From Trichoplax adhaerens (Eukaryota > Animalia > Placozoa): DNA of 64,000 nucleotides. The stretch's first letter is position 1. Each line of letters begins with the position of its first letter. The stretch lies in NCBI RefSeq assembly GCF_000150275.1, contig NW_002060950.1, positions 2,282,106 to 2,346,105 of the forward strand, in the 5' to 3' direction. The translations under genes were made by a program, and so were the position numbers. Of the stretch, positions 1 to 25,778 are shown one piece after another. Under the pieces are notes generated by a model. The model did no database searches and had not been told where the DNA came from. It worked only from the letters and a program-made list of their open reading frames with translations.

Positions 1-136
1 GAACGCTTATTAATCTTTTGAGCGAGCAATAGAACCAAAAAATAGTTAAAGTGAGGCCAGCGTCAAACTTGAATAGCTGAAGTATGTTTATAGCTTCATA
101 CATAGAATTGTTTAATAATACATAAAATATACTTAC

Positions 137-1063
137 AATACTTAGCATGTGTAGCTTCTTTTCATAATCGTTATCCGAGCACTGACCATCATCATGTACT
201 AATCCCACATTATCAATACCTTTACAGTTACTATCGGGTTCATCCTGCTTCTTCAAGAGTTTTAATATAAGGTGTCCGAATAGTTGTATATCTTTCTCTA
301 CTTGTGTACCATTATCAACATTTGTTGCCAAAGTAAAATTATATAAAATTGCAGTTTTAGGTCCCTGTAGAAATGAAGTTTGAAGTTTAGTGAAATTATC
401 TTCTTAACATATACTAACAGTAGTCAAATTGGAATAAGCTGAAATAGTTATGTTCGTTTCCATATGCCTAGGGTAAATCCGCTTGTTAGAGTATACATAC
501 CTTTGGTGTTCTAGATCCATATAAAATTGAGTCGTCCTCTAATAGATTAATAGCTATGTTTTTTTGATGAATATAGACTAGTGCTTCCAATATATCCAGA
601 GTGATGTCGTATAGGTTACCGATGCTAAGCGATTGAGAATTGGTTTTCATGACTTTGCAAAGCATTTCACCGTAAATTAGCTCGGTGCATATAACTCTGT
701 AAAGCATTAAAAATTTATTATTTTATTTAGAGTTCTGTTTACTATAAATTATTAGTAAATAATAGTTCTTAATTTAATGTAGTAGTGCCAAAAACCTACA
801 ATATGCAATTATGCAGTGAAGACTTACAGTTGCAAAAGAATATCGTTTACATTTTCACCCGGTGAACAGGTATATCGAAGTTCAGAGTAGGAAGATAACC
901 AAAGAAATTTGACAATTCCTTCTGGCTTACCTGACTCTTTCGATAATAGTCTTAATATTCTAGCTTCATTAGCCCACATATTGCGCTCTTTGTTACTGAA
1001 TGATTTCAACATACCAAATACTTTATCGCTTTTCCAGTTCAGCCAAGCTGCCATAATAAGAAA
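137..1063 (-). CDS. Three exons encoding a protein-kinase-fold (pseudokinase) domain
   Basis: Spliced translation: [22 protein letters not shown]...[11 protein letters not shown]...IVKFLW...[13 protein letters not shown]...[26 protein letters not shown]...AILYNFTLA...[15 protein letters not shown]. This matches kinase subdomains II, III, IV, V, VIa/b, VII and IX in order. Donors and acceptors are canonical with matching phases (0, 2, 0). Confidence 0.8.
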
Positions 1064-4000
1064 CTACAGAAGGAAGAGAAGAAGTGTCAATAAGAAAATG
1101 GAAAATATACTAACATGCAATAGTTATGTGTTATGTTTATTGTAAATTAATAAAGAAGTTTTAGAGCAAAAGAATAAAATTACATAGCTGTAATTTATAG
1201 AAATACGGTTAACACAGATCCAATATTATATGCTTATCGAAGTACTAGGTGCCTATTTAAATATTGCGATATTGAAGATCTGCCATGAAGCGTAAATCGC
1301 TTAATAGTTGTGTAGCTATGCAAATTGACACGTAGGAATATTTAAGAAAAAAGGAGATCATTATCTCAGTGGTGCTGATTATGCACACATATTTGAGTGT
1401 AGGAATAGTATACTTTTTATGATTCTGTTACGAACATAGATGAAAGGATCTTAAGGTATATACTGCACTGTTGGTGTATAGGACATTATTTAAATTTTGC
1501 TAGGTACTTTTAGATTGCTTATAAACATAAACGAGCTAGACAAAATGGCTACTAAGCAATTTATTTGTTCGTTACAAAAGCAACATTATATACCGGCCAA
1601 GCTCCTTATATACGTATTATCATTAAATTTAATACCTGTCCTTCTTTTAGCTGGCCACATTTTCTAATATTTACAATTGGCGGTTTATCAGCGGTTTCTA
1701 GATGGATTGATGAAATCAGTTTAGAACACCATATATTTATATATTCCATTAATTGAATGCTGGTATCTAATAAATGACTCTGTGTTCGATACTTACTTTT
1801 CATGGCTTCAAGTGGAACTGTGGGCGTAAAATTTCTAATGGTCCTTCTTGTGCTGTTAATAGTTGTATTGCTAGCTGAACTGGTGGAATAAACTTGTGAT
1901 TTAGTGGCAGATGTTCGCCGAGAGCTGGCCCATGACCTCATTAATCTTTCTTTAAAACTTTTTGTCGTCGCTGTGTATAGTATCGGATTAATTGCTGAAT
2001 TAATAGGTAAGCCTAGTACGGCGTAGTACGAAAATGTTCGAGCACCAATATTGACACCGAAAAATGTTAATATTGCTAAAACAATAGCTGGTAACCAGCA
2101 GGCAAGATCAGTAAATACGATCAGCATCATTTGAATCATAATTCGGCGTTGATTGAGAGCATCAGTTGATTGAACAGCTTGATTTGTTCGTTTAATTACG
2201 ATGAACATATTTAAATATAATGTAAGTATAATGATAAAAATAACTGTATTGCAAAATATAAATAAGCATAAAGTGTACAGCCAAGCGGTATTACGAGCTG
2301 GCGATAAGCTGAAGGGTAGACATACGCTAGACGAGGAGTAAAATCCACTGAAGTAGGGCATTAATTGTGAAAATGCTGGTGCTAAAAAGATCAGTAATGT
2401 CGTAGGCCAAGCACAAAACATAATGAATTTGGCTTTTCTTATTCCCAGTTTGTTGATAGAAAATGGATAAACAATCCATAAATAACGATCTATAGTCATA
2501 TTTAATAGGGTAAAAACCGACATTTCACTTGATATTGAGCTTATTATTCCGCAAATTTTGCAATATGGGCTATGTAGCCATGTTTTCTCTTCTTTAGCAT
2601 ATCTACCTTGCATATAGCGATCAGCTATACCAATTGATATTAAATAAACTCCCATCATAAAATCAGCGAAAGCTAAGTTTAAGATTAAAAAGCTTGGAAC
2701 GCTTTTCTGTTCTATTTTAACGTTCCAGCGATATAGTAATACTACAAGATTACATAGAATTGCGAATACACCCATAACCCAAACCATAACTTTCAAGACT
2801 TTATCAGCAAGCATATCTTGACATGATGATAATACATCTAAAGCGGGGTAGCACTGTTTAATGCCAGGCTTCAAGCAACAGAAATATGTACTGCTTGAAC
2901 GTCTGAAAATTGAAGATAAGAGTATCAAATGAAATTGAAGACTGAAAATGCTAGCAATATTTACTTCAATTACTGCTTTTGTTATTCTAGTGAGATCAAT
3001 ATAGGGTTAGTGAGTGCTTCCGAAGATTAAATAATTCCATTGGCCTAAGAGGATTGCATTACTCTTAACTGTAAGTAATATATCGGTAACGATCAGAAAT
3101 AGCTATGCCGCCTGGCAAATTTTAGTAATAATAAATGAAAGTAATCATAAGGTAAATACATACATACAAGTAAATAATAGAACAGGTATGGGTCCTTAAA
3201 ATTATAGTAGCTTGAAATAATTTGTACTCGTTTACAGAATTTTAAATTTACAAGCTATTCTATTATTAAGCTTTCTACTGTTATCGTAACTCAGATTTAC
3301 TTGCTCTACGACCTCTAATATTAATTTTTAGTCGTTTGACTATTACATATATGTATATATGTATATATACTTTTATATATACTTACAGATAGTGCAAATG
3401 AGTAAGATATTGAAACGTATTTTCAGCGATTAATCCAAGATCAAAAGGGTTATTTGATATTGTCCTAGATATTAGATAAAGTATTAAGCTCAATAAAATT
3501 ATGCTAGCTTAGATCTTTTAATCCTCTTCAAATGCGATCTGACTTACAATTCTGAAAGACTATTCATTCCAAAGAATACATCTGAGCTAATTGATTTCAA
3601 TTGATTATTCTGTAATAATCTATTTAGTGAAATTGATAGTGATAGTTTGAATAAATATTATTATAATACAGATAGATATATAATATTATGAGCAAGCTAG
3701 TACTATATGTATGTATTTATGCCTCTTTCAGTGAAAGCAGCTAGTAATTAAAATGACTTACAATGTTTTTAATTGAGCTAAATCTTGAAATGAGCCGCTT
3801 TCAATGAATTCTATCCAATTATAACTTAAATCGCTATTGGAAATAAATACCAAGTGATTACAAAGATTACTTAATATTTTGTTGATATTAAAAGTAAACA
3901 TACAGCAATTCTAAGTTCATCAAGCCATCGAAGGCTAAAGCAGAAATATTTTTTAAACTATTCTGTGCCAGATTCCTATAAATTTAAAGATGGTAAAATC

Positions 4001-7000
4001 AGCATAATTCTAGAAATGATAAAATATAAGAGAGAAATAGCAATGCGGCTACAACTTACAAGACAGTTAAATTGAAACACTGAGAAAAGGATCGATGAAT
4101 GGTAGATAGCTGTTGGTTGCTTAGATTGCTACAGATGTAATAAGAGATCGATAAATTTTTGAAATTCGGTCAATATGATTAAATTAATAATAGATACATT
4201 TAATAGATTCACTATGTGTACGAGAAAATTATTGTATGGAGAAGATAGTACTAACAGAATTCGAAGTTCTGCACATTCAGAAAAAGCTCCAGATTCAATT
4301 TCTTGTACGTAATTTCCTTGAATATACCTAAATAATGTAAGAAAATTTAGCTGCGCTATTTGTTCATTATTAAACTAAATTATTTTGACGTGGAAAATAT
4401 ATAGTCAGTTTTCATTAAAAGATTAATGTGTTCCTAAGCACAAATTTACACACGAAACAGAATTACTAACAGAGAACGTAGCCTTTTAACATTTTGAAGA
4501 AAATGTTGTGGAATGATCGTCATGTTATTGTAGCTTAGATCCCTAATCGATTCGAAAAATATTCAAAATGCAGTAATTAAGATGAATAATTGTTAAATAT
4601 TGAATAAGACATCATCATATTAATAGTTCAACATACAGAGCATAAAGACGAATCAAGCCTTTTAGGAATTCATTACTGCTTCCATCGTGGAATAAATGGT
4701 TATGGCTTAAATCGCTAAAAGAGATTACAATCCATGCTTTAGCTTTGATATAAAGATTGCTCGATTTTAATGTAGTAGTAGTTGAAGTTGAGATTAACGT
4801 TACGACTTACAGGAATCCTACATCAGATAATTTTGAAAACGGCTGGGCTGGCAATGTCTCAAATTGATTATGCGATAAGTATCTACAGTAAACCAATATA
4901 AGTTGTTATGCAGCGTATTATATAACTAAAATTGCAGCATGTGGTAAAATTTTATTGACTAAAGCAAGACAATATAAGAAATTTTTAATTTCAATTGATT
5001 AATGGTGCAAGCTATCCTTTAACATTTCAAAATATCATTTTAAACGACTATGCACATAGGAATAGAGATGAATTAAATATATTAGCTAACATGGCGGTAA
5101 GATCAACATTGAGGGGGCTTGGCAAAATTTGTAGTTTTCTGTTTCGGCAGTCTAATGAGGTGCTATTGCAAATGCAAGCGTTTGGACAAGTAATATTGGC
5201 TATATGAAGTATGGATAAGTATATATTTATGATGTTATAATATAGACGTAGAATTAATGATTCAAATTAATCTCTGAAGCATTGTAGATAGTCTCTATGA
5301 TACAACCCTATTAGATTCCAATATTTACCGCAATGAAGTTCATCTGATCCATCTTGGCAATCTATAACGTGATTACACAATGTTTCCCATTTACGACATT
5401 TAGTCCACCGACAAACTGGACATGCTGATTGCCCTGTTAGAGAAATTTTTTTTTACATAGAATTGAATTTAGGTCGGAATATGGTTTTGCTAAATAAGAG
5501 CTAGAAAGTATATCCTCATAATTTTTCTACCACATGCAATCTGTTGCGAGTTATCCTTGCATTTATATCCATTGTTGCATTTGTAATCATTTTGCACACA
5601 TTGGCCATCGTTACATTTAAAATCATTACTCCAACACGCCGTTACGTTAGCTATTTAAGTTCATGTCCAATTTGGTCGAATAGATATAAAAAGTAAATAA
5701 GCATGAAATATAATTAACAAAGTTTAAAAATATTATGATAACATATTACTGGCTACTTCTAATAAGTAATTACTTTTTTATACTATAAAATAAAAGCCAT
5801 TTGCAGATTTAATGATCGATTATAAGAGAAGTACCGTACTATAGCATAGTATTTATTAGAAGTTTTAGTTACTAATTCTTTGAAGTGAGCCTGATTTCAA
5901 TCAAAGATGTAGTTACATTTAATTTATTTCAAACTTACGGCAAAAAATTTCATCAGAATGATCGAGACAATTATTAATGTTGTCGCATGTATTTGCAAGC
6001 TGAATACAGCTGCCATCGTAACATTGAAATTGATTTTCATTGCAAGTTGATAAATCTATTGAGGAATGGAGATATTAGTTAATACTTGAGCAAACTAAGG
6101 TATATCGATTTCATTATTGTTTAAGAAAATGGATAGTAATTTATGCTGTATTACTTGAATTATTTCTATAGAATAGGCTAAATCCTCCTCCTTGATTAAA
6201 ATGGTTTATGACCACCAATTTCAGGTACAACACGTTGCCAACGAAAGTCATTTTCTCTGGACTTTGGCTACCGCAGTATCGCCTGGTTGTATCTAGTCTT
6301 TCATATTCAGTTGATATAGTTAAATAGTTTTGCTGGCAATCGTAACGACTATTAGGTAGGTAAAAACGACTAAATTGTAGTGTGATTTCCGATATATTTC
6401 CAGACGGTTGTATAGTATAGATGCACTGAGATTGATTGGATGGCAGTTGTGGGAACCTGTATGAACTAATTTTATCGGATTTAGCGTGGTAAATTTCATC
6501 ACATTTCGAAGCATTCCTTCCTATAAGGCAAAGGAGAGGACATAATATCAGTATATGGGTTTAAGTTACTCAAAACTTAGCTAAATTCATCAACTAAGAT
6601 GTAGTTATCATACCACAGAAACTCCAGTGAGAATTATCTTGGCAATAATGAGATGAATACTTGCAAACTTGGTGTTTATTTTCGCACTGGCCGTTACTGC
6701 ATTGGAATTCTGATGGCCAGCACGATTGAACTAGTAATAAAAATCATGATAGAATAATGTTAGAATAGAATATATGCGTATAAGGAGATATTTAGGCGAA
6801 ATGTTAAGAAACCTGTACGATGTTAGCTTACTCTCTACTGGTATAAAAGATGTATTTATATGATGAAACTAAAGCAGTATTTTATGGTAGCATATTCGAT
6901 AGTGATAAACGAAAAATTTAAACCAGCATGGTACCGTTAGTAACTCAAATCTATTTAAAAACTCATGTAATAAATAAATCTCGACGTGTAAAAGAATTTT

Positions 7001-10000
7001 TTGCTGTTGAAGAAAATCTATGAAAGTTTCTGTGCTGAAATTCTACCGCAATAACTTGGTAGACATTTAAGCAAATGATCACTCAAATGGGCATATTTCA
7101 TATTTCATAACTATAGTAAAACCCTTACGTGCAGTCTTATTTCCGCATAGGTATTCATCTGAATGATCAGAGCAAGCGAATTCACCGTTGCATCTTTCTG
7201 TTGCATCTACACATTCTCCATTTTGGCATTGAAAACTATCTTTAGGGCAAGGTGTATAGTCTAAAATAAAAATTTATTTATATCAATACGTACTTATAGC
7301 CTAAATATAATCGACACATCACGAATTCTAAAGCACACATTATGCATACCGTATTAAAAATGAGAAAATAGTAAAAGATGAAGAGATATATCAGCTAATG
7401 TTGCACAATTTACTGATTTTCTCACAGCTTACATGATAAAGATTGATAGAATGCAAAAAATCCACCCCCGTTCTTAGGTAGTTCCAATAGACTTGCGGAA
7501 CTGCTAATTCTCAATTGGATCAGTAACGATGATGAAGAAGAAATCATTACCGGAGGTATAGCCGAACCACAATATACACCTTGATAAATTCTTCGTGCGG
7601 CTAAGGTGTTACCGTCTCGAACAACGAGATAATCTTCTTTACAGTTTATAGATGGTCTCAGATAGAATCTTTTAAACGTTAAGACTACTCTGCTATTGGG
7701 ATCCTTTAGCTGAATGTGATATAAGCATTCTGTCCCAATGTGATATCGCGATGGATAACCAAAAGACTGAATAATTCCATGATTGGAATTGTAATTGAAA
7801 TTACAACCAGAGCTGTTTGTTACTGTTAATTGATTAAGAATTACTTTAAGTTAATAAAATTATTTATTCTTAAATTAATAATTATATTTGCAATACGTTA
7901 ATAGTTTCAAAGAGCGAAATTATAATTTTAATTACCGCAATTATATTCGTCTGATTCATCGATGCAGTCAATAACGGAATTGCATCTATAGGTATCGGGA
8001 AAAGCTAACATAGGTAGACATAGGCCGTCGCTGCATCTATATTCTCCTGGTATACACCCTATGTTTTTATCTTAAATAATTAATTTGAGGAGAGGAAATA
8101 CTTTAGTGGAGTTGGAATCATAAAATAATGAAAAATCTGACGTGAAAAATTAGATAGCATGATGACTATTGACGACATATAAATTTGTATTGGTTCGCCT
8201 AGTCTTATACTATAAATAGTACAAGTGCGTCGTTTCATCCTCTTAGCCACCTTACGTACTACAATTAGCTGAAATTATTACAAAATTCATCAGATGAAAT
8301 CATCTAAGATGCGAAAGGATCTTAAAAAATTGAGGGGATAATATATCGTAACGACTGAAGCAGATTTAGTAACTACCACAAGTAAGTAATAAATTCATGA
8401 AATTGTCGCACTGAGGCACTATTATTTAAAATGATTCTGCAAGTTTAATGCAGTGGTTTGTTAAACTTACCAAATTGCATTTGGTAGGTAATATTTACAA
8501 CATATTGGTGATCAAATACTCCATAGGGATTGTACTGAAAATTGAGCATAGCTATAGTTGCGTTAATTCCGTTTATTAGCCGTTGGAATGTATTCGAGGT
8601 ATGAATGCCACATTGAGAGTTTGAGACTAGTCCGTCTTGAAAGTTCTTCAAACTGTCTAGTTGAATAGCTGCTTTAGAACAGACAACTTGATCTTGATTA
8701 CCAATATTAACTCCTAAATGAAACATATTGTAGGTAAAATGGATGCCAACACCTTGCCTGTGATTAATTATAAAGCAGTATGTTGCCAGCTTATATGTAA
8801 GAGTTGATGGAATTGGAAGAATCATTGTTCTTTTTAATGCTGTCTCTGTAAAATCGCAATTACCGCTTTTAATACCTATAAAAATTTAGGTAAGTGAAAT
8901 AATTGAATCAGAAACAGTATCGGAAAATGTTTTAAGTTTACCCCCAAAAATAAATTTTATACCTAATTGAGTATTGGAATCGACAATGTACGCTCTAAAT
9001 CCAAAATTTCTCGTGTTATTACCAATTTGAATCCCAGTCGCATTCCATTTGTAAAGCAGATATAACGTCGATCCAGGTGTAATTTCCATACTTGGCGATT
9101 TTTGACCGCAATATCGACCAAGTAAAGTGCCTTGAGAACTATCACCTACTCGAATTTCTAAATAATTTTCCGCACAATGCTTGGAATTTCTATCACCGAT
9201 GTTGAAATTAATAAAAATTAACTTCAAAAAGCGATCACGACCTTGTAGTTGGTAAGTACAGAAATTATCGCTAGCTACGGTTTTAATAGAAGAATCAAAT
9301 GTTGGTGATTGAAAGAAACTAGACGATGAATCGGATGTCACTTTTTGATGACAGCTAGAACCTAATGGAAATAAAATTAAAAGTGGTATAGGTTAGGAGT
9401 TTATTAGGTAGGAAAGAAGAATAAAAATATCTGATAATAGCGTTACCTAATGAATAGTGGACAGGGTGGGTACATAGACTATTGCGTATCTCCATGTATC
9501 CAATATCTACGGTATTTAGACTAGTACCGTATCCTCCACTTGATATGATTAATTCAATCTATCTCAGAATGTTAATTATTATTTATAATTAATTAAACTG
9601 ATGTGGAAATAAATTGGAATTTAATGTACTTATCTAGGTATCACATAAGCATAGAAACTAGATTTATTAGTAATCCATAAAGCTTTAACCTGTACAACTT
9701 TCGTGAGAGCAATAGGAATAGTTTGAACTCTCCACTGGTTATCTACAGGATGCGTAGATAGCCATACCAGGATTGGCTTACTGTCGTTGATGGTAGTATA
9801 TTTTATTTGTAAATTAATACTTGACTCAATTGGGAATTTATACCATAAGATCATGCATAAACCATTTGTAGTACTGGAGATATAAGGGCTCTTTAGTGAA
9901 ATCGTTGTTGGCTTGTTGGCTAATTGGAACCTGTATATACTTCTAAACTGGCCTGAACGATTATGAAGAAGCTGTGCTAAGTAGCTAGTATGGTATTAAG

Positions 10001-13000
10001 TAAAGGATATGATTTGATAAAATAATGTGCCGTATACGAGTAGTTTATAGAAGACTTTCAATTGTATATCTATGATGTCATATAATACTCAGATCTTTGA
10101 GACTACTAGAAATCTATTAATATTACGTTCTAATAGTAAGTTATCTTTCATTTATCGGTTGTAAACTGTTACCTATACACCAAATAAGTTGATATACTTA
10201 TAGACTATCGCTAACTGATGCAAATGTTATGCGATAAAGATAAATTAGCTGAAGTTTCATAACATACGATATAAACCGTAGCAACAGATGCTACCAGTAC
10301 CTGATCCTTTCGTTATCCAATAATTTTTTGCAGACTCAGTATGCCAGTAGCTAATGTTACGGTCTGGATTAAATTGTGTAACTTGGCCTAATGCTGAAGC
10401 TAGCACATGAATAACAATTATTATACAGCAGATAAGCTCGATCTAAAGAATTGATTACTATTACAGGAACATATCAACGAAGATAAAATTTACCGATTAT
10501 TTTCCCAACAGTTATCCAAGATACATTGACTGAAAGAGCCAGCGAAGATTTTTGCAATAGTGTTGATGATTTAGTTATATATTGCATGTCAACTTGATTG
10601 CTAGATGCTTCTAGAGAGAAAGGCATCAGTGACAGATCAATTGTGCTAAGTGTTGGCGAAAAGGCTTTAATTGCGTCTTTAATATCTATTTTATGAGACT
10701 TTAAATCGGTTAATTCACTGCTGTTGAGTAGTTCAAGGCCATCAATTTGGATATTCAAGGCAATAACTCCATCATCCTGGCTTCGAATACTGTAAGTGCA
10801 ATTCTTAGTTAAGTCAATCTCCAGCGAACCTTTGGATGTTGTATAAACTCTCGAACAGCTAGCTTGCCGATCTGAAAAAGAAATTGACCGTCATTTATAA
10901 TTACATCGAAGTAATCATGATAAGAATTAGATCAATAACAAACTACGAGAAGGTTTTCCAAATATCGTAATTTTAACGATTCTAGCGTTAAGATAGCTTC
11001 AGTAAGAAGTAATAACTATTGCGATTCAATAAGTTAGAGTTATTTCGAATATTTAAAAGTAATGATACGATACGTTTATATAGGCGAAATTAAACATTTA
11101 GCGAATGGAAGAGTTCTAGGCTGGTGCGATTAGCTATGTATCATGGTGTAATACTTTCAATGCTACTATGCTTAAGGTTAATGTTTTATGAAATTTCAGA
11201 TAGTCTTTGACAAAATTGTTTAATACTTACTAAATCTACTGGCCACGGCCTTAAATCCCTTCTCTACTTTTGAATACCGAAGCCGGTTAGAATGAAATTT
11301 AACCCATAACCAATTTGATGTAGCCACCATGACAATTTTGACATCTTTACATAATTTTCCAATTAATTCTGAGGTGGATAAGGCTCCATCTCTTACTTCT
11401 AGGTAATCGTTGTCTTCCGTACAATCGTCATCTAGTGGTAGGCGAAAATGATCAAACTTCAAGTCTTGTATATCAATTTGAATGCGGTGCCCGGGATCGA
11501 TAGTTAATTTGTAAGTAAAATCACTTATGAGCGGATATGGCAATGGATAATTTGGTGATGTAAATTCTATAACGTCAGTGACCTTTTTTAGACGGATAAT
11601 TTGTTCTTTTTGCTGCGTCTGAGCTGTAATTTGAAATAAATAATTGCAAATCCACTTAATTTATCTTTATACAAGATGATTCAGATTGTAAATATCTATC
11701 GATCGATTACTTTTTAAATATTGTTAATTTAACGAGAGTACATAAAAGTAAAGCTAAATGAATTTTAATAACAAAACTACCATGTAAAATAAAAATAAAA
11801 ATTAAATATTTTACCTAAAAAATTTTCCAAGTGAAACTTGTATTTTACTTCGATATTTTTTTCGTAAAATGAATTAAGAATTTGCATCGGAGTCTTGGTA
11901 TTTATAGCTATTATTTGATCCGGATAGTCATTCGGACATAAATTTATTCGTGTATTAGTATCAATTTTCATTTGCAAATAATTGATCGCGCATTGGATTA
12001 ATGGTCGATTAGTTGTATAGTCCACAAGTTTGAGTCTTATATAAAAGCTGTTGATTTGTTTTGGAATGGAGAGAAGGGTTGTACACTGCATTGTATAAGG
12101 CGAAAAAAATGGATACCAGGGTGATTGAAAATATATCTGCCCATTGCTATCGTATACTTTAGCTTGCATATTAGCTTGTTTTGGACAATCTAAGTTTTCA
12201 ATAATAAAAATTAACAACATAACTAACATTAGAGAGCTGGAAAGTGGGAATATATGATAATCAAGAAATATCGTGGAGATATACTAAAAGTACGGTAGAG
12301 GCTATCTTGGATTTATATCTTTAACTGAGCTAACCAATTTTTTTCATTCGGATTACAGCGCATAATAGAACAGCTAAAGAAATTTTAATTTTCATAGCTA
12401 TATACTTTACCTGTGTTATTAAGATTACAGTTTAGACACACTATAATATCATCGATTGCTAAAGAATCTGTCGGTTTTTCTTGCCAGACTCTAATATTTA
12501 GCTAAGTGAAATAAAATTGGAATGAATAGTCTGGTTAGTGATATTTTATTATCTAAAATCTCGTAATGGTCATAACATTAACGTCAATTTACATTTGGAT
12601 GCCATTGCTACTAACTTTCTGATAAATACATGCAGACAATATTATAAACTCTGCATTCTATGCAATACCATATACATACTATAAAATGAACTTACATTTA
12701 TACCGGCTATTCCTTTGCTTAACTTGGGTATATTCAGTATAGGAAATTGAACGAATGACCAATCAGCAATTAATTTAAATTGCAAGCAATACTTTGTAGA
12801 ATTGACTGGTTGTGTAACGCCTAGTATTGAATAGGTAAGGTATATTCTGATCGGGAAATTTGATCCATGAAAGAGCCAGAAGCCGACATGAACTTGGCTA
12901 GAGCCTGGAATGGTGACAGTGGTAGAAATAGAGGCATTGGTTGCAGGCGTAAATTGATTGAGAGGATTTAGAACCAAATAATGCCCTAAGTATTAAAAAT

Positions 13001-16000
13001 TTAATTTCATATTTTTGTATTTTGCCTATGTATGTAATATCATTACATAGATTATTACGTGAAAATTACCTTGACCATCTCGGCCCTTTGTATGATCACG
13101 ATTTAATAATCCAATCTCAGCAGCACCAATAACTTTGTCAGAGGCATTCTTCGCAGAGAGAATTCGCCACCAACGATGACCATCTATGTTATCAACCTGC
13201 CACAGACATGGTATTTCAAATGAACATCTATATTTTGAGCCCGACCAAAATTCTTCTGATTCTAGGATTATTATTACCATAGAAACGTAAAGAAATTAAA
13301 GACTTAGTAGGACTTTATGTAAGAAGATAGTTGTTAAATCGTTTGACTATGTATGTCAAGACTAGATCCTAACATTACGATAGGCTATGAAAAGAAATTC
13401 ATATACACATGGTATACTAGTATAATATCAGATTGTACAAATTAAACAGAACTTACTAATATACGAAATCTTCAAACTAAAAAGCTTCTTTCTCTTATGA
13501 ATTGCCTGATAAGCAACGCTTCCAAACGATATTTCAAAGCTTAAGCCGCTGTTAGTTGTTGACAAAGACTTGGGCAATTCTTGGTTTAGTAAGCAATAAT
13601 GATCAGGATATGCCGTTATTAGCTTATCATTTCCGTCATGTATGGTTATAGTCGAAGAACACGCCAAAACATTCGATGAAAATTCAGGATCAACAGTCAG
13701 CTGTGCCTGTAAGGTTCCACTGTCTTCTGGTTGTCTAAGAATTGTAAAGCGGCATTGACTATTAAAAAAGGTTGGAGTAATTGGATTCCATCCTACTGTA
13801 TCTGACTGCGAACCAAAGTTAGCTAGTTGATTGCTGACATTGCAAATTCCTATAAGATTAATGAGGATACGAGTCAGTGATGACTATAAAATACCCGAGA
13901 AAATTTATTCTATAATACTCATAAAGGTATTACCAGCTGTTCCCTTCTGCAGATCTGGTTGTTGGACAGAGATTGCAGTAGCTTTAAATCCTGGATAAGT
14001 TGAAGGTTTCTTACGTTTTTGAGTGACAAAAATCACCTGCAATCGATCTCCTCTGGACGCAATAGACGTAATTAAATTAGGTTGACATAAATGCGCTAAA
14101 CTTTGACGATGATCACGTATTTCAACGTAATCGTAGCATTGTTCAGGATTACCCACAGGCAGAGGTAGAGAAATGGTCGAGAAACTCATATATATATGAT
14201 TTAATGAGGATGTTGTTTGTAGAGAATAGACATAAATTCCGTCAGACGGATACCCATTTGGAAAATTCGGTGATTCAAAGGTAGTGCTTTTCTTGACGTG
14301 GATGGGTGTAAATTGTGTTATTTCTAATGTAAAAGCATAGTACACAGATAATAGTTAATGTTTGATATTAAGTCATAGAGAAGAGCTAAGGTACTACTTA
14401 GGATTTCTGTAAATTCGCTGTCGTTTCGATGACATGATTTGTTATGTTAACATAGCACGTATTTAGGATACAATAAAATGTTTCTGGCGAACTAAAGGAC
14501 GGCCTAATTTCTGTTACTATTCTACGCTATACTTATCATTAGAAATGTTGTAAATGATATTTGTTACTATTAGCAATACGCATACTTAGCCAAATAAAAT
14601 TGTAATCATTTACTATAATTGTTAGGAGAAAAATAAATATCTAAATGAAGAATATTTTGAAGGTGTTTTTATTACCTATTCCTAATAGATTTAGTGAGAT
14701 TGCTATTAGATTTATCAATAGTACTAATACCAACGGTAGAATGTTACCTTTGTAGCTGATGGTAATAGTTTCACCAAATTTAAGTTCTTTCATGTTAACA
14801 GATATGAAAAATCTTGAAGAAATGGAAATTACGCTAGCTGAATGTGGTAATTGACTTGCTAAATCTAATCGATGGGTGGTGTTGGTCAAATTTAAATACT
14901 GATTTAAATTTACATTCGTTTTACTGATAGTGGTTGTAATTCGAAAATAAACTTGAGTGGCAGACTTTAGCTGAATTTGGAACCAGCATGGTCTGTTATA
15001 CTGTATACCAGCAGGGAAACGAGGAGTCGTTAGAGTTTCCTCTAATGAGGACCAAGTTGAATTGCATCGATCTAGTTCGAGTTTATGCAGGCAAATTTTA
15101 ATAAGTTATATATGGTCAAGTTTTGGTTAGAATAATGCAATCATAGTTTTTACTAGCTCTAATAGATAAAACTGCATATATAATATACAGGCTTTTAGAG
15201 CATAAAATTACCTTCATAGCTTGAATATTGCAGCTGAAATCGAATTTGATTTTTTAATAGGATGCTACTTGGCACTAATTCTAACTTGATGATATTCTCT
15301 GGTGAAATAATCGTCATATTAGGCGTTTTCTGGCAGAAATGAAATGCTGGTACGCGATCTGTAGTCGAACTGAAGTATATATTCAAGGCATGAACGCAGC
15401 CAATTCCTTCAAGATACCGTGATGGATGATCTTGAGCAGAGAGAGCAATGAAAGGTATATGGTTTGCTGTACTCGCAGTCTGGATGGAATAAGTATATGT
15501 CCGTATGGGTTGATAATTTTTAGGATAATATAACGTTGAGAGCAAATTAGCATCAGGCTGGATTACAGTATTGATGAGCTTGCCTTGTGAACTCGCTAAA
15601 TTAACATAAAAGGATAATGATGATTTAAGATCAGAAATACTGGAGGTAGAAAGGTATAGACAGAGATGGAAATTTTAGTCATGACAACGAGCAATTAAGA
15701 AATTTTATGACAATTATACTATAAAGGTGATTAAATCATTATGCTAAAATAGTGATAGATCGGAAAGTAGGGAGTAAATGTATAGTTAAGAATTTACTCA
15801 GTCACATGATTTTATTGCTTTACTAACTAAAGAAGGTTTAGGAATATTTAAATAAAACATATGGACATAGATATCGGGTCCGTTAAATTTGACACAGTAC
15901 CTAGTTTTGTATTCGCAATGCAGTGGCCACTAAATCCAATGGATGCTCGATTATCATGAATGGATTTTACAATAAGTCGTACAGTAGTGATATCGCTATT

Positions 16001-19000
16001 ATTGACAATGATCTTATCAATTTGTGGTGAGTTATGGTATAATTTTGCAATTAAAACTGTTTTGGATTGGCGTTGGCTAGTAATTTCTAAATAATTAGCA
16101 TATTTCCTATTCAAATATATCTGATTTGATTGATTCTCTACAGTTGAGAGGGTAAGACTGTCGAAGAAAAGTTCTGAAAATGCTGTTTTGCTTTTCGATT
16201 TAATAGTTACGACATATTCCGAATTTGATCCGTTGGCAAGTAGCTGTATTGATTGACCGACACAATAATTATCAACTTCCGTTGGTGCTACGTAAAAGGA
16301 CGTAGTAATTTATGTTATTATGGTGAAAACTGCTAATAAGTAAAATATTTTGAAAGATCACATTAATTACCTAATATTGGTGATGATTTGAAGCTTGATT
16401 GTAAATGAAACGAACGGTCTGTATTAGACGGATTCCACTTTCTTACTACAACTACGGTCATGATACTCATTGATGATGTGATGGTATAATTAAGTCCTTG
16501 ATCATCAATTTGCTGGCATATTCTAATTATTAGATTATCCAGTGTAGCTTCTTTGCCATCAAAGATCTCAATGTAATCGTCGCTTGTAGCGCACTGGCCG
16601 CTAGATCGGGATGAAAGAAATTTATTTATGGATAAAACGATAGTTTCGTTAGACTTTGTGGCCATAAGCTGGTATATACAACTCCTATTTGTTGGTATTG
16701 ACATATCTATACTTGAGATGTTTATATTCCCTTGGCCGGATAATGTTTTGTGGCACGTTTCAACTGCAAAATTATGTACATCAAGAACATTCATTATGTT
16801 AATCTGATGCCAGATCTCTTCATCAAGAGCTATAAAATATGTTTAGATGAGATTTGATATGATTGATGAAATATATGACCAGTACGTAAATATTGCTTAC
16901 TTACCGTAATAATATTTCGCTGTAAATCCAACTCCAGTATATAAGCCATTACTGTGAAATCTTACATTTAGACTAGAATTTGATTGGAAAGGTATTCCGA
17001 CAGCGGTGGAACTACAAATAGGACCGGCTACGTAGTCCACTTGATTTTGATAAAGATAAATTCTATCACCTAAGCAGCTCGCATCACTAATATCGAGCTC
17101 AATCAAATCAAATTTTAAAATAATTGTCTTATTTGGACGGGCTGGAAAGTGATAGATACAATTCAAATTAACACTGTAGTTATGTGGATAATTTGGGCTA
17201 GTTATGATACCAGAATCATCGATGATTGTTCTGTTGCAGACGAGCTCTAAGGACATAAATAGACAAAGGAAATGGGATTTGAAATTATTATAATTTTTAT
17301 TATTAGTGCTGACCAGTTCGCAAATTATTTAACAGGCGATATGGTACCGTGATCCTAATTGGTAGTTATATATATCTAATATTGATCGTCTATTAAAAAT
17401 TTCTACCTTTCTTGCAGATATAGCCTAATCGATCAGTAAAATTTTTAGCTCTCCATTTTCCATTTTCTAATGTAATTGGTCCAGAAACTTGAGATTCGCT
17501 CTCTTTTGCCCAATTTGTGTAATTAACGTTATTTACATTATCAGGAAACCAGCGGAATCCTGGGTAATCGTTTTGATCTAAACTAAAACTACTTATATGA
17601 ATACCCAACCAGATTGGTCGAAACAGTATTGATGCCAAATATTGGTTTTCTTCTTGATTTTTAATTGATACTAGATGTGCTTGATATTGAAGACATTGCT
17701 CTTCAGCTGTAGCATAACTTTGCTGATAGTAAATAAACATGAAGTTATACAAGTTACTGCCAAATAGACTCCATGCTGATCCTATAATACAATCCAAAAA
17801 CAACAAATGATGCAAAATTTCTATTGAAAAATGTTAGAAATAAATTTTCGTGGGCAGTATTTACCTGCTTTATATTTAATGTTCACGATGAAGTGATACC
17901 GATTGCGAATATAGATTGTTAGATAAGTTATAGGCCCTATGTTGATAAATCGGTTGTGCAGTTTAAAATCGCAAATTGAATAGGTTTTAGCAATGGTCGG
18001 TAGGAATAGATCGATGGTATTTTGACATTTCCTGCCAATTTGATCGAAATCAACAGATTTAAATTCTAATTCTGTTGTATGATGTACTGGCAATGTTATT
18101 TTTATGTTGTACTGCCAACAATGGCTCGGATAACTTTGATTACCACGAATTTGAATAGAACCTGATGACTGATTAAAGACTAGATTGCAATTGGATGTCG
18201 AACCTGTAGAGAAATTGGAGAACGTAAAATTTATTATATGTATAAAGGGTTTCAAACTTTAAACGCAATATAGATAATGATGAATACTGTGCTTTTTCTT
18301 TATTAATAGTGAAAGCTACTACATAGGAGCTAATCTTTATTATTAATTTTTCAGTAATTTTATATTGCCTTGCTATATTACAAACTAAATTAGTGATTGT
18401 TGGTAATTGCGTTGCATTTCAGTTTTGGAAACTGGAAAAGCAGCTGCTCTACTATTTTTCTTCCCATTTAAGGTGACTATATGATACTAAGCAAGTATTT
18501 TATAAGTATTCGTTGAATTATAGTGATCTTCTAAAAGTCACTTATTTCATCTATTCAATGTAACCTTATGCGATATCGGTATTTAAGCTTATGAATGGAA
18601 TTTATTTATAAAATTTACATTAATTACATATCTTGGTCTACTGTTTTTTACACTAAAAAATAACTTTATTAACCAGGTTCATCTTACAATTGCCTACAGA
18701 GATAATAACTCAAACACGAGGCAGTTAATTTCTATTTTGGTGTTGTAAGATTTTGAAGCAATGTAGTGATAATAACTGTCGATACAACTCATATTGTAAA
18801 TAGTTGTTATTGCGATGATCGTTACGGTACTTGAATGGTTCGTATAAGCATTTCGTATACCAGCGGTACTTTAAGATCTAATTTTATGAAATTAATTTTT
18901 TATGCCTGTATTATCTGAAATATTTATCAAGCTAGTAATGATGACTAAATTGAAAGTGTGATTATGTAAGTACTCTAGCATTGTATGAGATATAGCAATC

Positions 19001-22000
19001 TTTACCGCAATTCAATTCATCACTCCAGTCTGGACAGTCATATTTGCCATCGCAAACTTTGTTAGATTGTATACATTGTCCATAACTACAATTAAAATGT
19101 TGAGAAGGACATGTCGTAGCTGCAGAATTGACAAATTAGATATAAATTAGTTAATTATACAATTCGATAATGGAAGCATACCAATAAAATTGTGTCCTTA
19201 ATGGTAACATACCTTGTTCTATGGCTTTGTATTTCAAGCTAAATCCATAGTATTTCGATTGTTGTCGATAGGTTGCATTAGTAAGTAATGTCAGTTCGAC
19301 AACGTTGCCACACGAAATATAAGGTAATGGAATAGATTTACCACAATATCTTCTCATATTTACTGTTTTGCTTGTTGAGCATTTTACATCTTTAATAAGT
19401 AAGCTTTCACATCCACATGCGTCACAAGATGCAATCTCGATGTCTTCAAATGTAATAATAATGAAATATTTAGGATCAACAGAAATAGTATAATGACATG
19501 TATTCCTATTTTGATATGTTTTTGGATAACCAATCGATCTGATACTGCCTGATGTTGCAGTAAAATATTTATTGCAGCTTTTGGGATTAACTAAAAATAG
19601 GAATAAGATTGAAAAAATATTATCTAGACCATTTTTGATATTCGATCGAGTTAGGATCATGCGACATATATATTTTTCATCTTAATTTCTTGCTATACTG
19701 ATAGAAATGTCAGCTACATTTATATACTAGTAAATTAGCACACGCGGTTAATACGAAAAAGAAATCTTACAGTTTGTGCTAAAAAAGCTTATTATTACCG
19801 CAATTTAATCCATTACTATCCATACAATCGTGGATATTTTGACATTGTTTCTGTTTATCAACACAACGATGAAAATGGCAGCTAAAATTGCCATAAGAAC
19901 ATGTTTTCAGTCCTGAAAATAAATATGTAAAATATTATTAATGTATAGTATCAATATTTATTAATAAACAGCTTTATTACTATAATTTCTTTTCCGTTTC
20001 AAACATGAATTAATATAATCTACAATATACCGCAATATTGTTCGTCGTCACCGTCAAAGCAATCCTGATAACCATCGCAGACGCTTTTTATATTGATGCA
20101 CTGTCCATTGGAACATGCTGCTTCCGATTGACTGCTGCATTGTCGATATGCTACGATTAATTAATAGAAACCAAAATGAAGAGAATATGGTATGTGAAAT
20201 CTTTTATCTTACAAGAAGCTTATTAATTTTATTAAAAAAAGTTTAATTTGGGCCCTATAGTGATTACAAATTTAAATTTCGATAATTAATTGATTTTGCC
20301 GTGGTCATACTAAATAATTGTTCGAAATTATTAGTAAGCACATTTTTTAAGGTTTAAAAGTAAAACAGTCTTTCTGCTATACCGAAAACGATCTCAGAAA
20401 TTAAATAGCTAAATATGCGAAATATCATTTTGTACTAAAAATTACTATGATCCAGTAAGTAGCTAACATTAATCAAAAGTTTTCTGTGCACTCTGTATGT
20501 TATGCTCTATACACTCTAAGATGGCAATTCAAAATTTTTATGGCTTGAAGTGAGCTGGTGTCACGGTACGCCGTTACTAATTAAGTAACTGTCGATTAAT
20601 GAATGCTTATGAATAGATAAGATAAGGTTATTTGCTATGTTTTAATGCGCTTGTAGCTGATAATAGGATGGTAGAAATGAGATAAAAACAGAAGTTGTTA
20701 GCAGTTAATTTACTGTAGGTTTATAAGGTGTGTTAATCTCTAAAAATTAAGCTGTATGAGGACGAAGGCTAAGCGTCTTAACACCTGATAGCTTGTAGCT
20801 ATCTAAGTCTGAGAATATCGACATGTATATTTAGTAATGGTATTATACTAATTAATGTAACTTGTAAAGCATGAATTCTCACTCGTTAATATTGGAATTC
20901 ACTGTAGAAACCTATTTAAGCGCGTGTGTTTGTAGAATAAAGTAAGTAATTGCTCAAGAAACGGCAAGACTCATATCGTGAAGAATAGTGTAATAATTAG
21001 TCAGTTGTCTGTGGAGATCAGCCGAGAAATCGAGTTCTCAAATACTTCTCTCATAGAAACTGAAAGTACTGGGAGAAATAGCCCAAGTTTTAAGTAACTA
21101 CACTAGAGTTCTTTACTTTCCTTTGCCACAAGTGAGGGTTGTGACAGCTGGTAATACACTTATGTAGTTTGATCGCGTTGTTAAACTAACATACTTATGA
21201 GAATCTCATTTCAACGTAATACTGTGAATCGAACATTAGATGCATATTATACTGATCGTGTATTATTCTTCGTAAAATATTTTATTAACAAGAGTAACAT
21301 ATTGACTAATTATTGTATTACTTATACTAAAAGTAACTACTTGAACAATCGATAGTTACTGAAACAAAGATCATTATTCTTCGTTGAGAAAATCGCAGGT
21401 GCATCTATATTGAAAACTATTTAATTACTCATTATTTGGCTATCAATGTGAGCGTAATTACCGTTTACTCATAAACAATTGTATTAAATGTGGCTTGTCA
21501 AATGTTCAATAAAAAAATGAATACTACATGTTACACCAGCTTGAAAAGAGTTTTAATATAACTTTGAAAAATCTTTAATGTAGAATGAGCTTTTGACTTG
21601 GTTTATCCTTAGCTATTAGATCGTATTACCGATATTTCATTTTAAATTCGAACACGCTGAAATGAATACTATCTTCTTATAAAATGACTAGAAATGAAAA
21701 GACTAAGCCTTGCATATTGTTTATTACAATCTAGCTTCCATTTACTTATCACTAGTCTTACCATGTAATTAAAGTAATAATTGGAAAATAGATTGTTAAT
21801 ATTTTGTACGAGGCACATAATTTGGGAAATAAATAATATTATTATCGTCTAATATGACATGAATGTTTTATGTCATCTGGCTTGATCTTTCTAGAGTATA
21901 ATTTTTAACTAGCTATTATAATTTATGTAGAAATTGACTGCCCAAATTTCCGTTGACATGTTAAAGAAATTCCGTAAATGAATCGATTGCAAATACAGTA

Positions 22001-25000: not shown

Positions 25001-25778
25001 TAATGCTCGAAAACTTACCACAATTTTTTTCGTCTTCTCCAAATGGAAGATCAAAATGGTGATCACATAATATTTTAGCTGTCTGGATGGTTTGTCCATT
25101 ATTGCTACTCTTGACTTCTAATAGAAATATAAGAAATACGATTATAGTAAGCGGACTTTATAGCTTTAGTAGAAAAGCTTGATGTCGCAGCACAGCGTTA
25201 AAGCAATATAGCAATGCACTTTAATTTATATATGTTAAAATCATCTCTGAAAGAAATCAAGGATGTATTAAAGTTGCAACGATTCATTTAAGTAGCGTCA
25301 GTTTACGTTCATGTAAGACAATCATGTAATCGTGGAAGTAAAGGTATTAACCCTATTCAGTCAGATAAATTAGTATAGTACACTTTGAGATATAATAAGT
25401 CAATTTTAGATCTGCGCTAAAGTCTTAAGTTGTGATAAATAAGATAGAGTTGTCATCATAAATCATCTTATAAAATAGATTTAAAAAAAGAATTGTTTTT
25501 CTGCGATGAAATTATCTAAAGCTTTGCAGTAAAGGACAAACAGCTTTGATAGCTGTGTTGCCAGAAAATTGAAATATAGACATTATGAGTTAGCGATAAT
25601 ATACTAAATCCGAAATTTTAAATTAAAAAGGGATGACAAAGATGAAGAGGTATTTAAGCGTTTGAAAAATCAGTTCATAACTTTAATTAATAATTCATGG
25701 CGTAAACTTTATAATAATTCATTTACCTTGACATGAATATGCAGCCATACATAATAATATTAAGATTGTAAATTGCAT
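137..25778 (-). CDS. Multi-exon giant LGR (GRL101/RXFP-like, type C) receptor: SP-LDLa/CUB/CTLD/MAM ectodomain-LRR-7TM-pseudokinase; 3' end not resolved within the window
   Basis: More than 40 GT-AG exons, phase-compatible at the junctions checked by hand. Exon 1 25727-25778 = [17 protein letters not shown] (signal peptide). Mostly phase-1 domain exons follow, then phase-2 LRR exons, the 7TM exon 1636-2902 and kinase-like exons 828-1063, 501-696 and 137-364. Confidence 0.85.
1636..2902 (-). CDS. LGR hinge + rhodopsin-type 7TM + Ser/Thr-rich C-tail exon
   Basis: FCC...C.P..D..SSC.D.L hinge, [30 protein letters not shown] and [11 protein letters not shown] motifs typical of GRL101/RXFP-type LGRs (ORF 1606..2928). 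Acceptor ttttcag precedes 2902; donor CAG|GTATTA follows 1636. Confidence 0.95.
3387..5199 (-). CDS. LRRNT exon plus nine single-LRR exons
   Basis: LRRNT 5091-5199 ([20 protein letters not shown]). Phase-2 exons of 69-78 nt at 4811-4882, 4637-4714, 4471-4542, 4256-4327, 4060-4128, 3904-3975, 3762-3833, 3548-3619 and 3387-3464, with an LxxNxL/I...F..L pattern (e.g. [18 protein letters not shown]). Confidence 0.9.
5328..8058 (-). CDS. Membrane-proximal ectodomain block: six LDLa exons and two CUB exons
   Basis: LDLa-type exons near 5328-5432, 5531-5650, 5939-6055, 6614-6731, 7129-7261 and 7937-8058 (C..F.C..G.CI....C....DC.D.SDE..C pattern). CUB exons near 6155-6520 (KCDEIY...QCIYTI...RRYCGSQSP) and 7433-7822 (GCNF...GYPSRY...ECLYHI...DYLVVRDG...YCG). 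Confidence 0.85.
8491..18203 (-). CDS. Central ectodomain block: ~13 CUB/CUB-like exons, two split MAM-like domains, one C-type lectin domain
   Basis: The ORF track shows canonical CUBs (16897..17256 [10 protein letters not shown], 13905..14345, 11220..11543, 8886..9341, 16363..16794) and divergent ones. MAM-like CSFEIPCLW...DHT...G lies at 12411-13262, with a second at ~9447-10395. CTLD at ~17408-17800 (AEEQC...HLVSI...EN...WLG...YICKK). Confidence 0.8.
19006..25117 (-). CDS. N-terminal ectodomain block: four LDLa exons (first degenerate), CUB, LDLa
   Basis: LDLa exons at 25019-25117, 23010-23126 ([15 protein letters not shown]...[16 protein letters not shown]), 20031-20150, 19799-19912 and 19006-19120. 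CUB exon ~19213-19590. The LDLa exons translated by hand are phase 1. Confidence 0.88.

Follow-up and report, generated by a model that had tools for sequence, protein, structure and literature searches.

A GRL101-like leucine-rich-repeat GPCR of Trichoplax adhaerens with a predicted cytoplasmic pseudokinase tail

Textbooks present animal class A GPCRs as receptors that have no signalling domain of their own in the cytoplasm. Descriptions of GRL101 and other leucine-rich-repeat GPCRs (LGRs) show no cytoplasmic domain (PMC4079206, PMC8286064). GRL101 of Lymnaea stagnalis is still an orphan, with IGF proposed as its ligand, and is reported absent in vertebrates and holometabolous insects; a dual use of insulin-like peptides by LGRs and RTKs has also been proposed (PMC8286064). 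Fusions of GPCRs to kinases include the GPCR-TK and GPCR-TKL proteins with intact kinase domains of choanoflagellates, sponges and oomycetes (PMC12716839) and the GPCR-TKL and GPCR-PIPK 'bigrams' of oomycetes and amoebae (PMC12716839, PMC5784254, PMC10463195). Among animals, such fusions are said in a recent survey to be sponge-only (PMC12716839), and brief mentions exist for sponges (PMC12716839) and, as 'GPCR-TMKs', for sea urchins (PMC10463195).

The Trichoplax receptor described here can be compared with each of these. Like GRL101 and the type-C LGRs (RXFP1/2, arthropod LGR3-5), it has a rhodopsin-class 7TM region after the LRRs and multiple LDLa modules; unlike them, it has a far larger, CUB-rich ectodomain and a predicted cytoplasmic pseudokinase of ~275 aa. 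With the GPCR-TK/TKL/K, GPCR-PIPK and GPCR-TMK proteins it shares the union of a 7TM region and a kinase-type C-terminal domain within a single polypeptide, but theirs are Pfam-detectable, apparently intact kinases or lipid kinases attached to other 7TM types, whereas here an LGR 7TM is joined to an apparently dead kinase. An LGR 7TM is unreported in the descriptions of the GPCR-TK/TKL/K families (PMC12716839). In having a kinase fold without catalytic residues, the tail is comparable to JAK JH2, KSR1/2, HER3, ROR/RYK/PTK7 and the kinase-homology domain of receptor guanylyl cyclases, a likeness at the level of fold and profile alone. Receptor-tethered and regulatory pseudokinases serve as allosteric or scaffolding modules; to our knowledge, those of the JAK JH2, KSR, HER3, ROR/RYK/PTK7 and receptor guanylyl cyclase types are single-pass or soluble proteins, none of them fused to a GPCR.

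The DNA analysed is a 64,000-nucleotide stretch of Trichoplax adhaerens contig NW_002060950.1 (hereafter the window), of which one minus-strand gene occupies positions 1 to ~25,118 and continues for ~450 nt past the left edge. Its product is orthologous to RDD41659.1 of Trichoplax sp. H2 (P0159 here), a protein of 3850 aa with an identical exon chain for which the only name given is 'GRL101-like'. The window exon chain matches the C-terminus of this protein with 97-100% identity, and with the gene start near 25,118 a product of ~3850 aa is predicted. The T. adhaerens and H2 sequences are 99.4% identical over 3.5 kb (19 differences), for which reason dN/dS between them is uninformative. The encoded layout is a CUB/LDLa mosaic ectodomain, LRRs, 7TM region, ~60-aa linker and ~275-aa cytoplasmic kinase fold, the last distributed over five small exons; every exon is open and the splice phases are compatible along the minus strand.

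The ectodomain exons, with alternating LDLa and CUB(-like) modules, lie at 5267..25118 and correspond to approximately residues 7-2945 of the H2 orthologue. The tblastn matches of P0159 to this part of the window are collinear, with 87-100% identity, and LDLa and CUB signatures are present in its open segments. Pfam searches on P0159 recover CUB (1e-106), Ldl_recept_a (3e-56, eight stretches) and LRR_8 (5.8e-41). A reading of raw motifs had also offered MAM and C-type lectin exons, which were rejected as neither is found by Pfam on P0159 at E<=0.1. The LDLa modules are N-terminal to the LRRs, which are encoded between 3387 and 5266 by an LRRNT exon and nine LRR exons of ~72 nt each. These are delimited by RNA contig joints at 3387-3463, 3547-3619, 3762-3833, 3904-3974, 4059-4128, 4256-4325, 4469-4541, 4636-4714, 4811-4882 and from 5091 onwards, and in the contigs they are joined to the 7TM exon, placing the LRRs directly N-terminal of the 7TM region. 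The hinge, the rhodopsin-class 7TM region and the start of the cytoplasmic tail are encoded at 1797..2902 (contig piece L006 2597-3702), in an exon ending in a phase-1 donor (AAAA/GTAAGT). The 7tm_1 profile (PF00001) matches with E=1.2e-28 over positions 2-260 of 260. All 30 names looked up among the best 150 of 6230 matches are GRL101-like, relaxin-receptor-like or uncharacterised, and in a FastTree phylogeny the receptor falls within a clade of 65 rows with support 97. Together, domain content and phylogeny identify the gene as one predicted to encode a type-C (GRL101/relaxin-receptor-like) LGR.

The original prediction placed the 7TM region and a Gly-loop-like strand of a kinase fold in one open exon, joined in phase 0 from 1636 to 1063. 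The joint itself is borne out exactly: it occurs with GT..AG ends (L006 1863->2436) in RNA contigs of four runs from four studies (X5, X8, X9 and X10), and removes an intron of 572 nt (1064..1635). The exon end at 1636 has the donor GGA CAG/GTATTA and the exon start at 1063 the acceptor ttctcttccttctgtag/TTT, both phase 0, and the joined peptide, continuing as FLIMAAW after the junction, is identical to residues 3590-3604 of P0159. The 7TM exon has to be redrawn. A 99-nt GT..AG intron at 1698..1796, lying within an apparently continuous ORF, is spliced out in the contigs of all four runs (L006 2497->2597), and its sequence is missing from P0159. Hence the 7TM exon is 2902-1797, and the strand in question, beta1 with the Gly-loop-like stretch of the kinase-like N-lobe, sits in a separate 62-nt mini-exon (1636..1697) seen in both the RNA contigs and P0159. 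As the 99-nt intron is in frame, its retention would add 33 aa.

These data bear directly on the alternative that two adjoining genes are involved, namely an LGR whose coding sequence stops at 1606 and, from the ATG at 1054, a separate small kinase-like gene, with occasional read-through or chimeric transcripts giving rise to the junction. Such an arrangement could draw on the in-frame read-through stop (1606-1608, inside the 572-nt intron) that follows the unspliced ORF, on the ATG four codons into the exon starting at 1063 and on the public reference model P0001, which covers the 7TM region only. Against this, the spliced form is found in all four runs, contig depth is zero at ~1201-1600 (L006 2001-2400), and a kinase-like product begun at 1054 would be without beta1. 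Furthermore, the fusion recurs with equal intron positions in Nematostella and Ptychodera, in the H2 model and at no fewer than seven paralogous loci, making the two-gene arrangement exceedingly unlikely. A single polypeptide combining an LGR 7TM region with a kinase fold that runs across several exon junctions, as first proposed, is what the RNA contigs, P0159 and the profile matches indicate. The contigs of the four runs contain every junction along the chain of LRR exons, 7TM exon, mini-exon and four kinase-like exons into the 3' UTR, and one of them, from X10, has 12,040 nt and matches an 11.5-kb ORF plus UTR in size; the contigs being assemblies rather than single molecules, the single 12-kb RNA is pieced together from overlapping junction-spanning segments.

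Downstream of the mini-exon, the exon at 828..1063, with a phase-2 donor, encodes the predicted beta2, beta3 (FGMLK), alphaC (NEARIL), beta4 and beta5 of the N-lobe, as read from its translation. The exon at 501..696 would supply the hinge, alphaD, alphaE and a catalytic-loop remnant (Pkinase and profile matches), and that at 137..364 (contig piece L006 937-1163) beta8, a DFG remnant (ILYNFT), an alphaF-like stretch and an acidic insert with DNDYEK, according to the family HMM alignment. The gene, initially taken to end at 137, has a further intron that starts at 136 and reaches 350 nt past the window edge (1..136 within the window; joint L006 449->937 in all four runs). A last exon of 33 codons outside the window (L002 7649-7551, or 7649-7548 with the stop; CEEIIRPPSDEEF...NWIRNF and stop; CEEII...NWIRNF) contributes an alphaH/alphaI-like segment and the stop codon, and equals residues 3818-3850 of P0159, in which the kinase-like tail as a whole comprises residues 3576-3850. 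A candidate alphaF helix in the frame continuing past the donor at 137 (LFKFDAGLTL...) was rejected, the RNA contigs skipping this stretch.

The profile evidence argues firmly that the tail is kinase-derived. Exon 501-696 alone matches Pkinase with E=0.0066 over profile positions 75-120, at 16.3 bits versus a Pfam cut-off of 31.7, and all the single-sequence Pfam kinase matches on the window's own exons are similarly under the gathering score. It is this last fact that could favour an unrelated helical domain with a chance likeness to the alphaE/catalytic-loop region. Yet a three-species profile of the same exon (A1, 64 positions) retrieves 440 solved kinases at E<=1, led by JAK1 JH2 (2.3e-6) and KSR1 (4e-6), with nothing but kinases at the top. 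Likewise, weak Pkinase or PK_Tyr_Ser-Thr matches are obtained with eight homologues (P0004, P0046, P0160, P0013, P0057, P0049, P0149 and P0112) at equal profile coordinates, in the common region of positions ~44-163, and one of them, P0057, at 24.4 bits exceeds the Pfam cut-off of 23.1. The N-lobe and C-lobe elements of the tail are collinear with those of a true Trichoplax tyrosine kinase in an alignment, and an independent language-model search concurs, the features of the Ptychodera tail scoring 0.97 against Pkinase clusters. A chance likeness is therefore very unlikely. The N-lobe signal is fainter: the three-species profile of exon 828-1063 (A2) gives weak PDB matches (E 0.14-0.5), with protein kinases making up 30 of the 34 among the matches listed, aligned at about chain residues 30-100 in the N-lobe, and the tentative assignment of this region to alphaC-beta4 is statistically weak by itself. 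The mini-exon aligns collinearly to IKLIEKLGQGAFG of the true Trichoplax tyrosine kinase, a stretch that is not significant alone.

The kinase-derived fold of the original prediction hence stands, while its enzyme-like character does not. In the window protein the Gly-loop-equivalent stretch has no GxGxxG, and the catalytic-loop remnant, which aligns to ...IHRDLAARN (HRDLAARN being that of the real Trichoplax tyrosine kinase) and ...VHKDLKSKN, has I-N-L in place of HRD (Asp to Leu) and Ser for the catalytic-loop Asn. DFG is replaced by YNF, and an alphaF-like stretch follows ~12 residues later, leaving almost no activation segment or APE. Lacking a Gly-loop, the Asp residues of HRD and DFG, the catalytic Asn and an activation segment, the tail is classified from its sequence as a pseudokinase predicted to be incapable of phosphorylation. 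A working enzyme, that is, a true GPCR-receptor-kinase hybrid phosphorylating substrates, might be sought in the candidate beta3 Lys (K of FGMLKSF) and alphaC Glu (E of NEARIL), in a part of the alignment that is weak, both of which have counterparts in Nematostella; GPCR-TK and GPCR-TKL proteins with intact kinases are moreover known in choanoflagellates, sponges and oomycetes (PMC12716839). With every one of the above catalytic elements lost in the window protein, and the HRD Asp also absent in the Nematostella and hemichordate orthologues, this idea is hardly tenable.

The pseudokinase tail is more widespread than this one gene. Among 147 scored LGR proteins with a near-complete 7TM region, 35 carry it at their very C-terminal end (38 sequences if further cluster members are counted), the named carriers being RefSeq or GenBank models from Placozoa, Cnidaria, Hemichordata, Echinodermata, Mollusca, Nemertea and Chelicerata. 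At the level of sequence databases, the premise that animal LGRs have no cytoplasmic enzyme-like domain is contradicted by these models from seven phyla. In echinoderms, molluscs, nemerteans and chelicerates, GRL101-like receptors terminate in a shortened C-lobe version of ~95 aa, with the consensus ...L..LH..giVHG... followed by DI..FG.L..LL. The tails of Nematostella and Ptychodera are also split, over 5-7 exons, and share intron positions and phases with that of Trichoplax, including the phase-0 intron after the mini-exon and the conserved phase-2 intron after the N-lobe exon (828-1063). The equivalent tails with matching introns in Nematostella and hemichordates argue that the arrangement is old. 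In T. adhaerens itself, a three-species profile search of the genome located at least seven other loci with 7TM and kinase-like exons on the same strand; single-exon queries against the same genome had found no close paralogues. Two further searches carry little weight: no RNA-derived protein fragment with the tail was matched by a query made from the unspliced-ORF tail region, and the tail region of P0159, which is probably not a cluster representative, gave no match.

Alternatively, the tail could be what is left of an ancient kinase fusion, without function and on its way to being lost, in a receptor that works as an ordinary LGR. The domain is extremely degenerate: many lineages have half the fold, in most no more than ~95 aa of C-lobe sequence is retained, and a tail is absent from many close 7TM relatives. 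The tree requires at least 12 gains or losses. Conversely, the motifs LH..iVHG, DI..FG.L..LL and DNDYEK are kept together with the intron phases across lineages as far apart as placozoans, cnidarians and bilaterians, and the tail persists in at least eight paralogues within a single compact genome. Neither is expected of a relic, and we regard this reading as improbable. As to novelty, no paper describing an LGR with a pseudokinase tail was found in the searchable literature, and to this extent the suggestion of an undescribed receptor class holds. It belongs however to a known family, and RDD41659.1 already makes the full fused ORF public; given this and the tail-bearing models of seven phyla, comparison of the sequences identifies the tail as an unannotated ancient feature of the known GRL101-like family rather than the mark of a wholly new receptor class.

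We consider it highly probable that the locus produces a fused transcript for a receptor with CUB/LDLa modules, LRRs, a 7TM region and a degenerate kinase tail. A scaffold or regulatory role for this tail we infer entirely, by analogy. Ligand binding by the ectodomain would switch the 7TM bundle, after which the tethered pseudokinase would serve, without catalysis, as an output or regulatory element. One possibility is a docking and allosteric scaffold by which a partner, for instance an active kinase, is recruited or activated, in the manner of JAK JH2, KSR, HER3 and the kinase-homology domains that receptor guanylyl cyclases carry; alternatively, it could gate the access of G proteins, GRKs or arrestins to the receptor core. 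A wider proposal, which we offer tentatively as a possibility that is rather less than probable, is that GPCR/receptor-kinase hybrids signalling via a tethered pseudokinase make up an old class of rhodopsin-type hormone receptors, dating back at least to the placozoan-cnidarian-bilaterian ancestor, with the half-kinase tails being functional.

For Trichoplax, the immediate consequence is a corrected reference annotation: the public model P0001, a 280-aa protein 100% identical to the 7TM exon, is a fragment of a ~3850-aa gene. More generally, there is now an RNA-supported LGR with a predicted kinase-fold domain; this tail, degenerate enough to escape routine Pfam annotation, recurs in GRL101-like receptors of seven phyla and in at least eight Trichoplax paralogues. 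If the wider proposal is true, the tail of GRL101-like LGRs would recruit partners from kinase pathways and physically connect the signalling of LGRs with that of receptor kinases, for example in the proposed use of insulin-like peptides by both LGRs and RTKs (PMC8286064), and the ~95-aa 'half-kinase' tails known from echinoderms, molluscs, nemerteans and chelicerates would represent the smallest functional form of the module. The finding of the tail also prompts one to ask why a receptor of this kind would then be missing from vertebrates and holometabolous insects, which are reported to be without GRL101 (PMC8286064). The conserved pseudokinase tail may offer a handle on the intracellular partners of the orphan receptor GRL101.

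The rhodopsin-class 7TM domain (PF00001, E=1.2e-28) lies inside a minus-strand open reading frame (2928..1606), downstream of which are three more open exons with GT..AG borders and compatible phases. The original prediction had joined the donor GGACAG/GTATTA (exon end 1636) to the acceptor ttctgtag/TTT (exon start 1063), both phase 0 and on the minus strand. This junction is real: Logan contigs from four runs of four different studies (one a declared RNA-Seq library), placed on a 6-kb genomic stretch (L006, window -799..5200), contain it as a spliced GT..AG joint in 4/4 runs. The spliced contigs of all four define, on the minus strand, the 7TM exon (2902..1797), an in-frame 99-nt GT..AG intron (1796..1698), a 62-nt mini-exon with the Gly-loop-like strand (1697..1636), the intron 1635..1064, three kinase-like exons with open frames (1063..828, 696..501 and 364..137), a last GT..AG intron (136 to 350 nt past the window edge) and a last exon (7649-7551 of the genomic stretch L002, outside the window) encoding CEEIIRPPSDEEFIKSYNSTEVLAMMKNWIRNF up to the stop codon, followed by the 3' UTR. 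Two details of the prediction are thereby corrected. The 7TM frame had been taken as a single exon containing the Gly-loop-like strand; the 99-nt intron, a multiple of three without a stop, leaves the unspliced reading open across 1698-1796, and hence the mini-exon was not set apart. The gene also extends beyond 137, where it had been thought to end.

No contig in the four runs covers about 1201-1600, so that neither retention of the intron 1635..1064 nor a transcript ending past the stop at 1606 was observed. Retention of the smaller intron (1698-1796) would add 33 residues (ending SSIHLE) to the linker with the frame intact, and only the spliced form occurs in 4/4 runs. The reading frame runs on past the donor at 137 for another 65 codons (VSIFYVLL...LFKFDAGLTLTIFWFYCSLKRL...EEVP and a stop; window 1-136 and L002 7942-8136, minus strand), a stretch skipped by the RNA contigs; one low-depth contig of 167 nt from run X5 lies within the last intron (window -220..-54). 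RNA continues for at least 349 nt past the stop codon and, in run X8, for a further 537 nt (L006 1-449 and beyond). Two readings fit: a 3' UTR almost 0.9 kb long, or overlap with the convergent neighbor seen in the Trichoplax sp. H2 locus (L009 31495-32144).

When 1.84 billion representatives were scanned by HMMER with the 7TM exon as the query, a 280-aa, 7TM-only model of the same locus was recovered (P0001, 100% identity); its 90% cluster includes RDD41659.1 (P0159), a 3850-aa 'GRL101-like protein [Trichoplax sp. H2]'. The final 273 residues of the latter match the exon chain of the window exon by exon at 97-100% identity, and the entire protein is collinear with the window between about 25,118 and 137. 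A 12,040-nt contig from run X10 spans the 3' UTR and every LRR exon and continues upstream. On the combined evidence of the RNA contigs and the H2 orthologue, the true gene at the P0001 locus is about 26 kb long and encodes about 3850 aa. Searches with the window used its exons one at a time, and whole-protein steps used the public orthologue P0159. Pfam detects CUB (1e-106), LDLa (3e-56), LRR_8 (6e-41) and 7tm_1 domains in P0159, and no kinase domain in the whole protein.

The exon 696-501 alone matches Pkinase at E=0.0066 (profile positions 75-120). Homologous exons were located by mapping RefSeq models on the Nematostella (L007) and Ptychodera (L008) loci, and at E<=1 a profile of the three translations retrieved 440 solved kinase sequences, all distinct, with alignments running from hinge to catalytic loop; the best matches are the JAK1 JH2 pseudokinase (2.3e-6) and KSR1 (4e-6). 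The profile of the preceding exon (1063-828) is weak (E 0.14-0.5); kinases account for 30/34 listed matches, around chain residues 30-100, a region we place at alphaC-beta4. Whole-protein Pfam scans give Pkinase/PK_Tyr_Ser-Thr matches (profile positions about 44-163) in eight homologues: Ptychodera P0004 (5e-5), Nematostella P0046 (1.5e-4), Glandiceps P0160 (2e-5), P0013, P0049, P0149, P0112 and P0057 (24.4 bits, above the 23.1 cut-off). By language-model features the Ptychodera tail is nearest to Pkinase clusters (score 0.97). The family HMM is collinear with a genuine Trichoplax tyrosine kinase: a tail strand aligns with IKLIEKLGQGAFG, FGMLK and the part following it with a segment that includes KEAAIMKKL, and the catalytic-loop stretch with YIHRDLAARN, the N-lobe part not being significant alone. 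The tail domain lacks the Gly-rich loop, the catalytic Asp, the catalytic-loop Asn, the DFG Asp and the activation segment and is therefore, judged by its sequence, a pseudokinase.

The phase 0 intron after the beta1 strand, the phase 2 intron before the hinge and the phase 0 intron before the DFG remnant are common to Trichoplax, Nematostella and Ptychodera; the phase 0 intron before the last helices is shared by the first two, the Ptychodera model ending before that point. Such sharing is difficult to account for without a fused gene already present in the common ancestor of the three. The Ptychodera model P0004 ends 8 residues past the DFG-like FDF (L008 55464-55523), and the Glandiceps orthologue P0160 goes on for about 110 aa beyond that point with alphaF to alphaI-like helices; P0004 probably represents a truncated model or an alternative isoform. 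In Nematostella the last tail exon is preceded by an intron that apparently uses a GC donor (TACGAG/gcaagt, L007 42682/42683).

An HMM of the tail module, iterated on the retrieved LGR proteins, places it at the very C-terminal end of 38 sequences; when just the proteins whose 7TM is near-complete are counted, the figure is 35 of 147. Among named proteins these come from Placozoa, Cnidaria, Hemichordata (Ptychodera, Glandiceps, Saccoglossus), Echinodermata (six genera), Mollusca (six genera), Nemertea and Chelicerata (mites, a tick and spiders). The N-lobe is kept only in the Trichoplax, Nematostella, Ptychodera and Glandiceps proteins, whereas what the other tail-bearing ones keep is about 95 aa, covering alphaD through alphaF. 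One such 'half-kinase' tail, in P0149 of Holothuria leucospilota, lacks the N-lobe and reads HGDVSEN (residues about 590-610), with the HRD-type Asp and catalytic-loop Asn kept. Proteins with the tail cluster in the 7TM tree (0/500 shuffles as low) and are not monophyletic, requiring at least 12 changes, a pattern suggesting that the tail was lost repeatedly, that models are truncated, or both.

In the T. adhaerens genome the exon profile has 22 matches. At seven of them (L031, L035, L036, L042, L045, L046 and L048) an LGR-type 7TM exon precedes the match by 1-3 kb on the same strand, and the seven sequences share a ..SLH..iVHG.. motif. No 7TM was found within the DNA stretches examined at three other family matches (L033, L034 and L040). 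One Trichoplax family locus has HRH instead of HRD. These predicted exon pairs make up a multigene family of LGR-pseudokinase receptors in Trichoplax.

GPCR-kinase fusions have been reviewed (PMC12716839, 2025), sea urchin GPCR-type transmembrane kinases are mentioned in one sentence of PMC10463195, and papers on GRL101 and LGR evolution (PMC4079206, PMC8286064) mention no cytoplasmic domain. Our search of the literature outside subscription journals returned nothing relevant on GRL101 or LGR together with a pseudokinase or kinase domain.

In the segment that separates the alphaF-like helix from the last helices, the tails share a short acidic Tyr motif, which reads DNDYEK in Trichoplax (P0159 3800-3806) and in Glandiceps and HDAYE in Nematostella; that it might be a docking or phosphorylation site is speculation. 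As had been predicted, the 7TM and the kinase-like tail are encoded as one polypeptide: one transcript and one open reading frame, the exon chain of which corresponds to the C-terminus of P0159, combine an LGR ectodomain and 7TM with a dead, deeply conserved kinase fold. Analogy with JAK JH2, KSR, HER3 and the kinase-homology domain of receptor guanylyl cyclases leads to the proposal that the tail would act as a non-catalytic scaffold or allosteric module linking the activated 7TM bundle to a partner; alternatively, it may control access to the receptor core.
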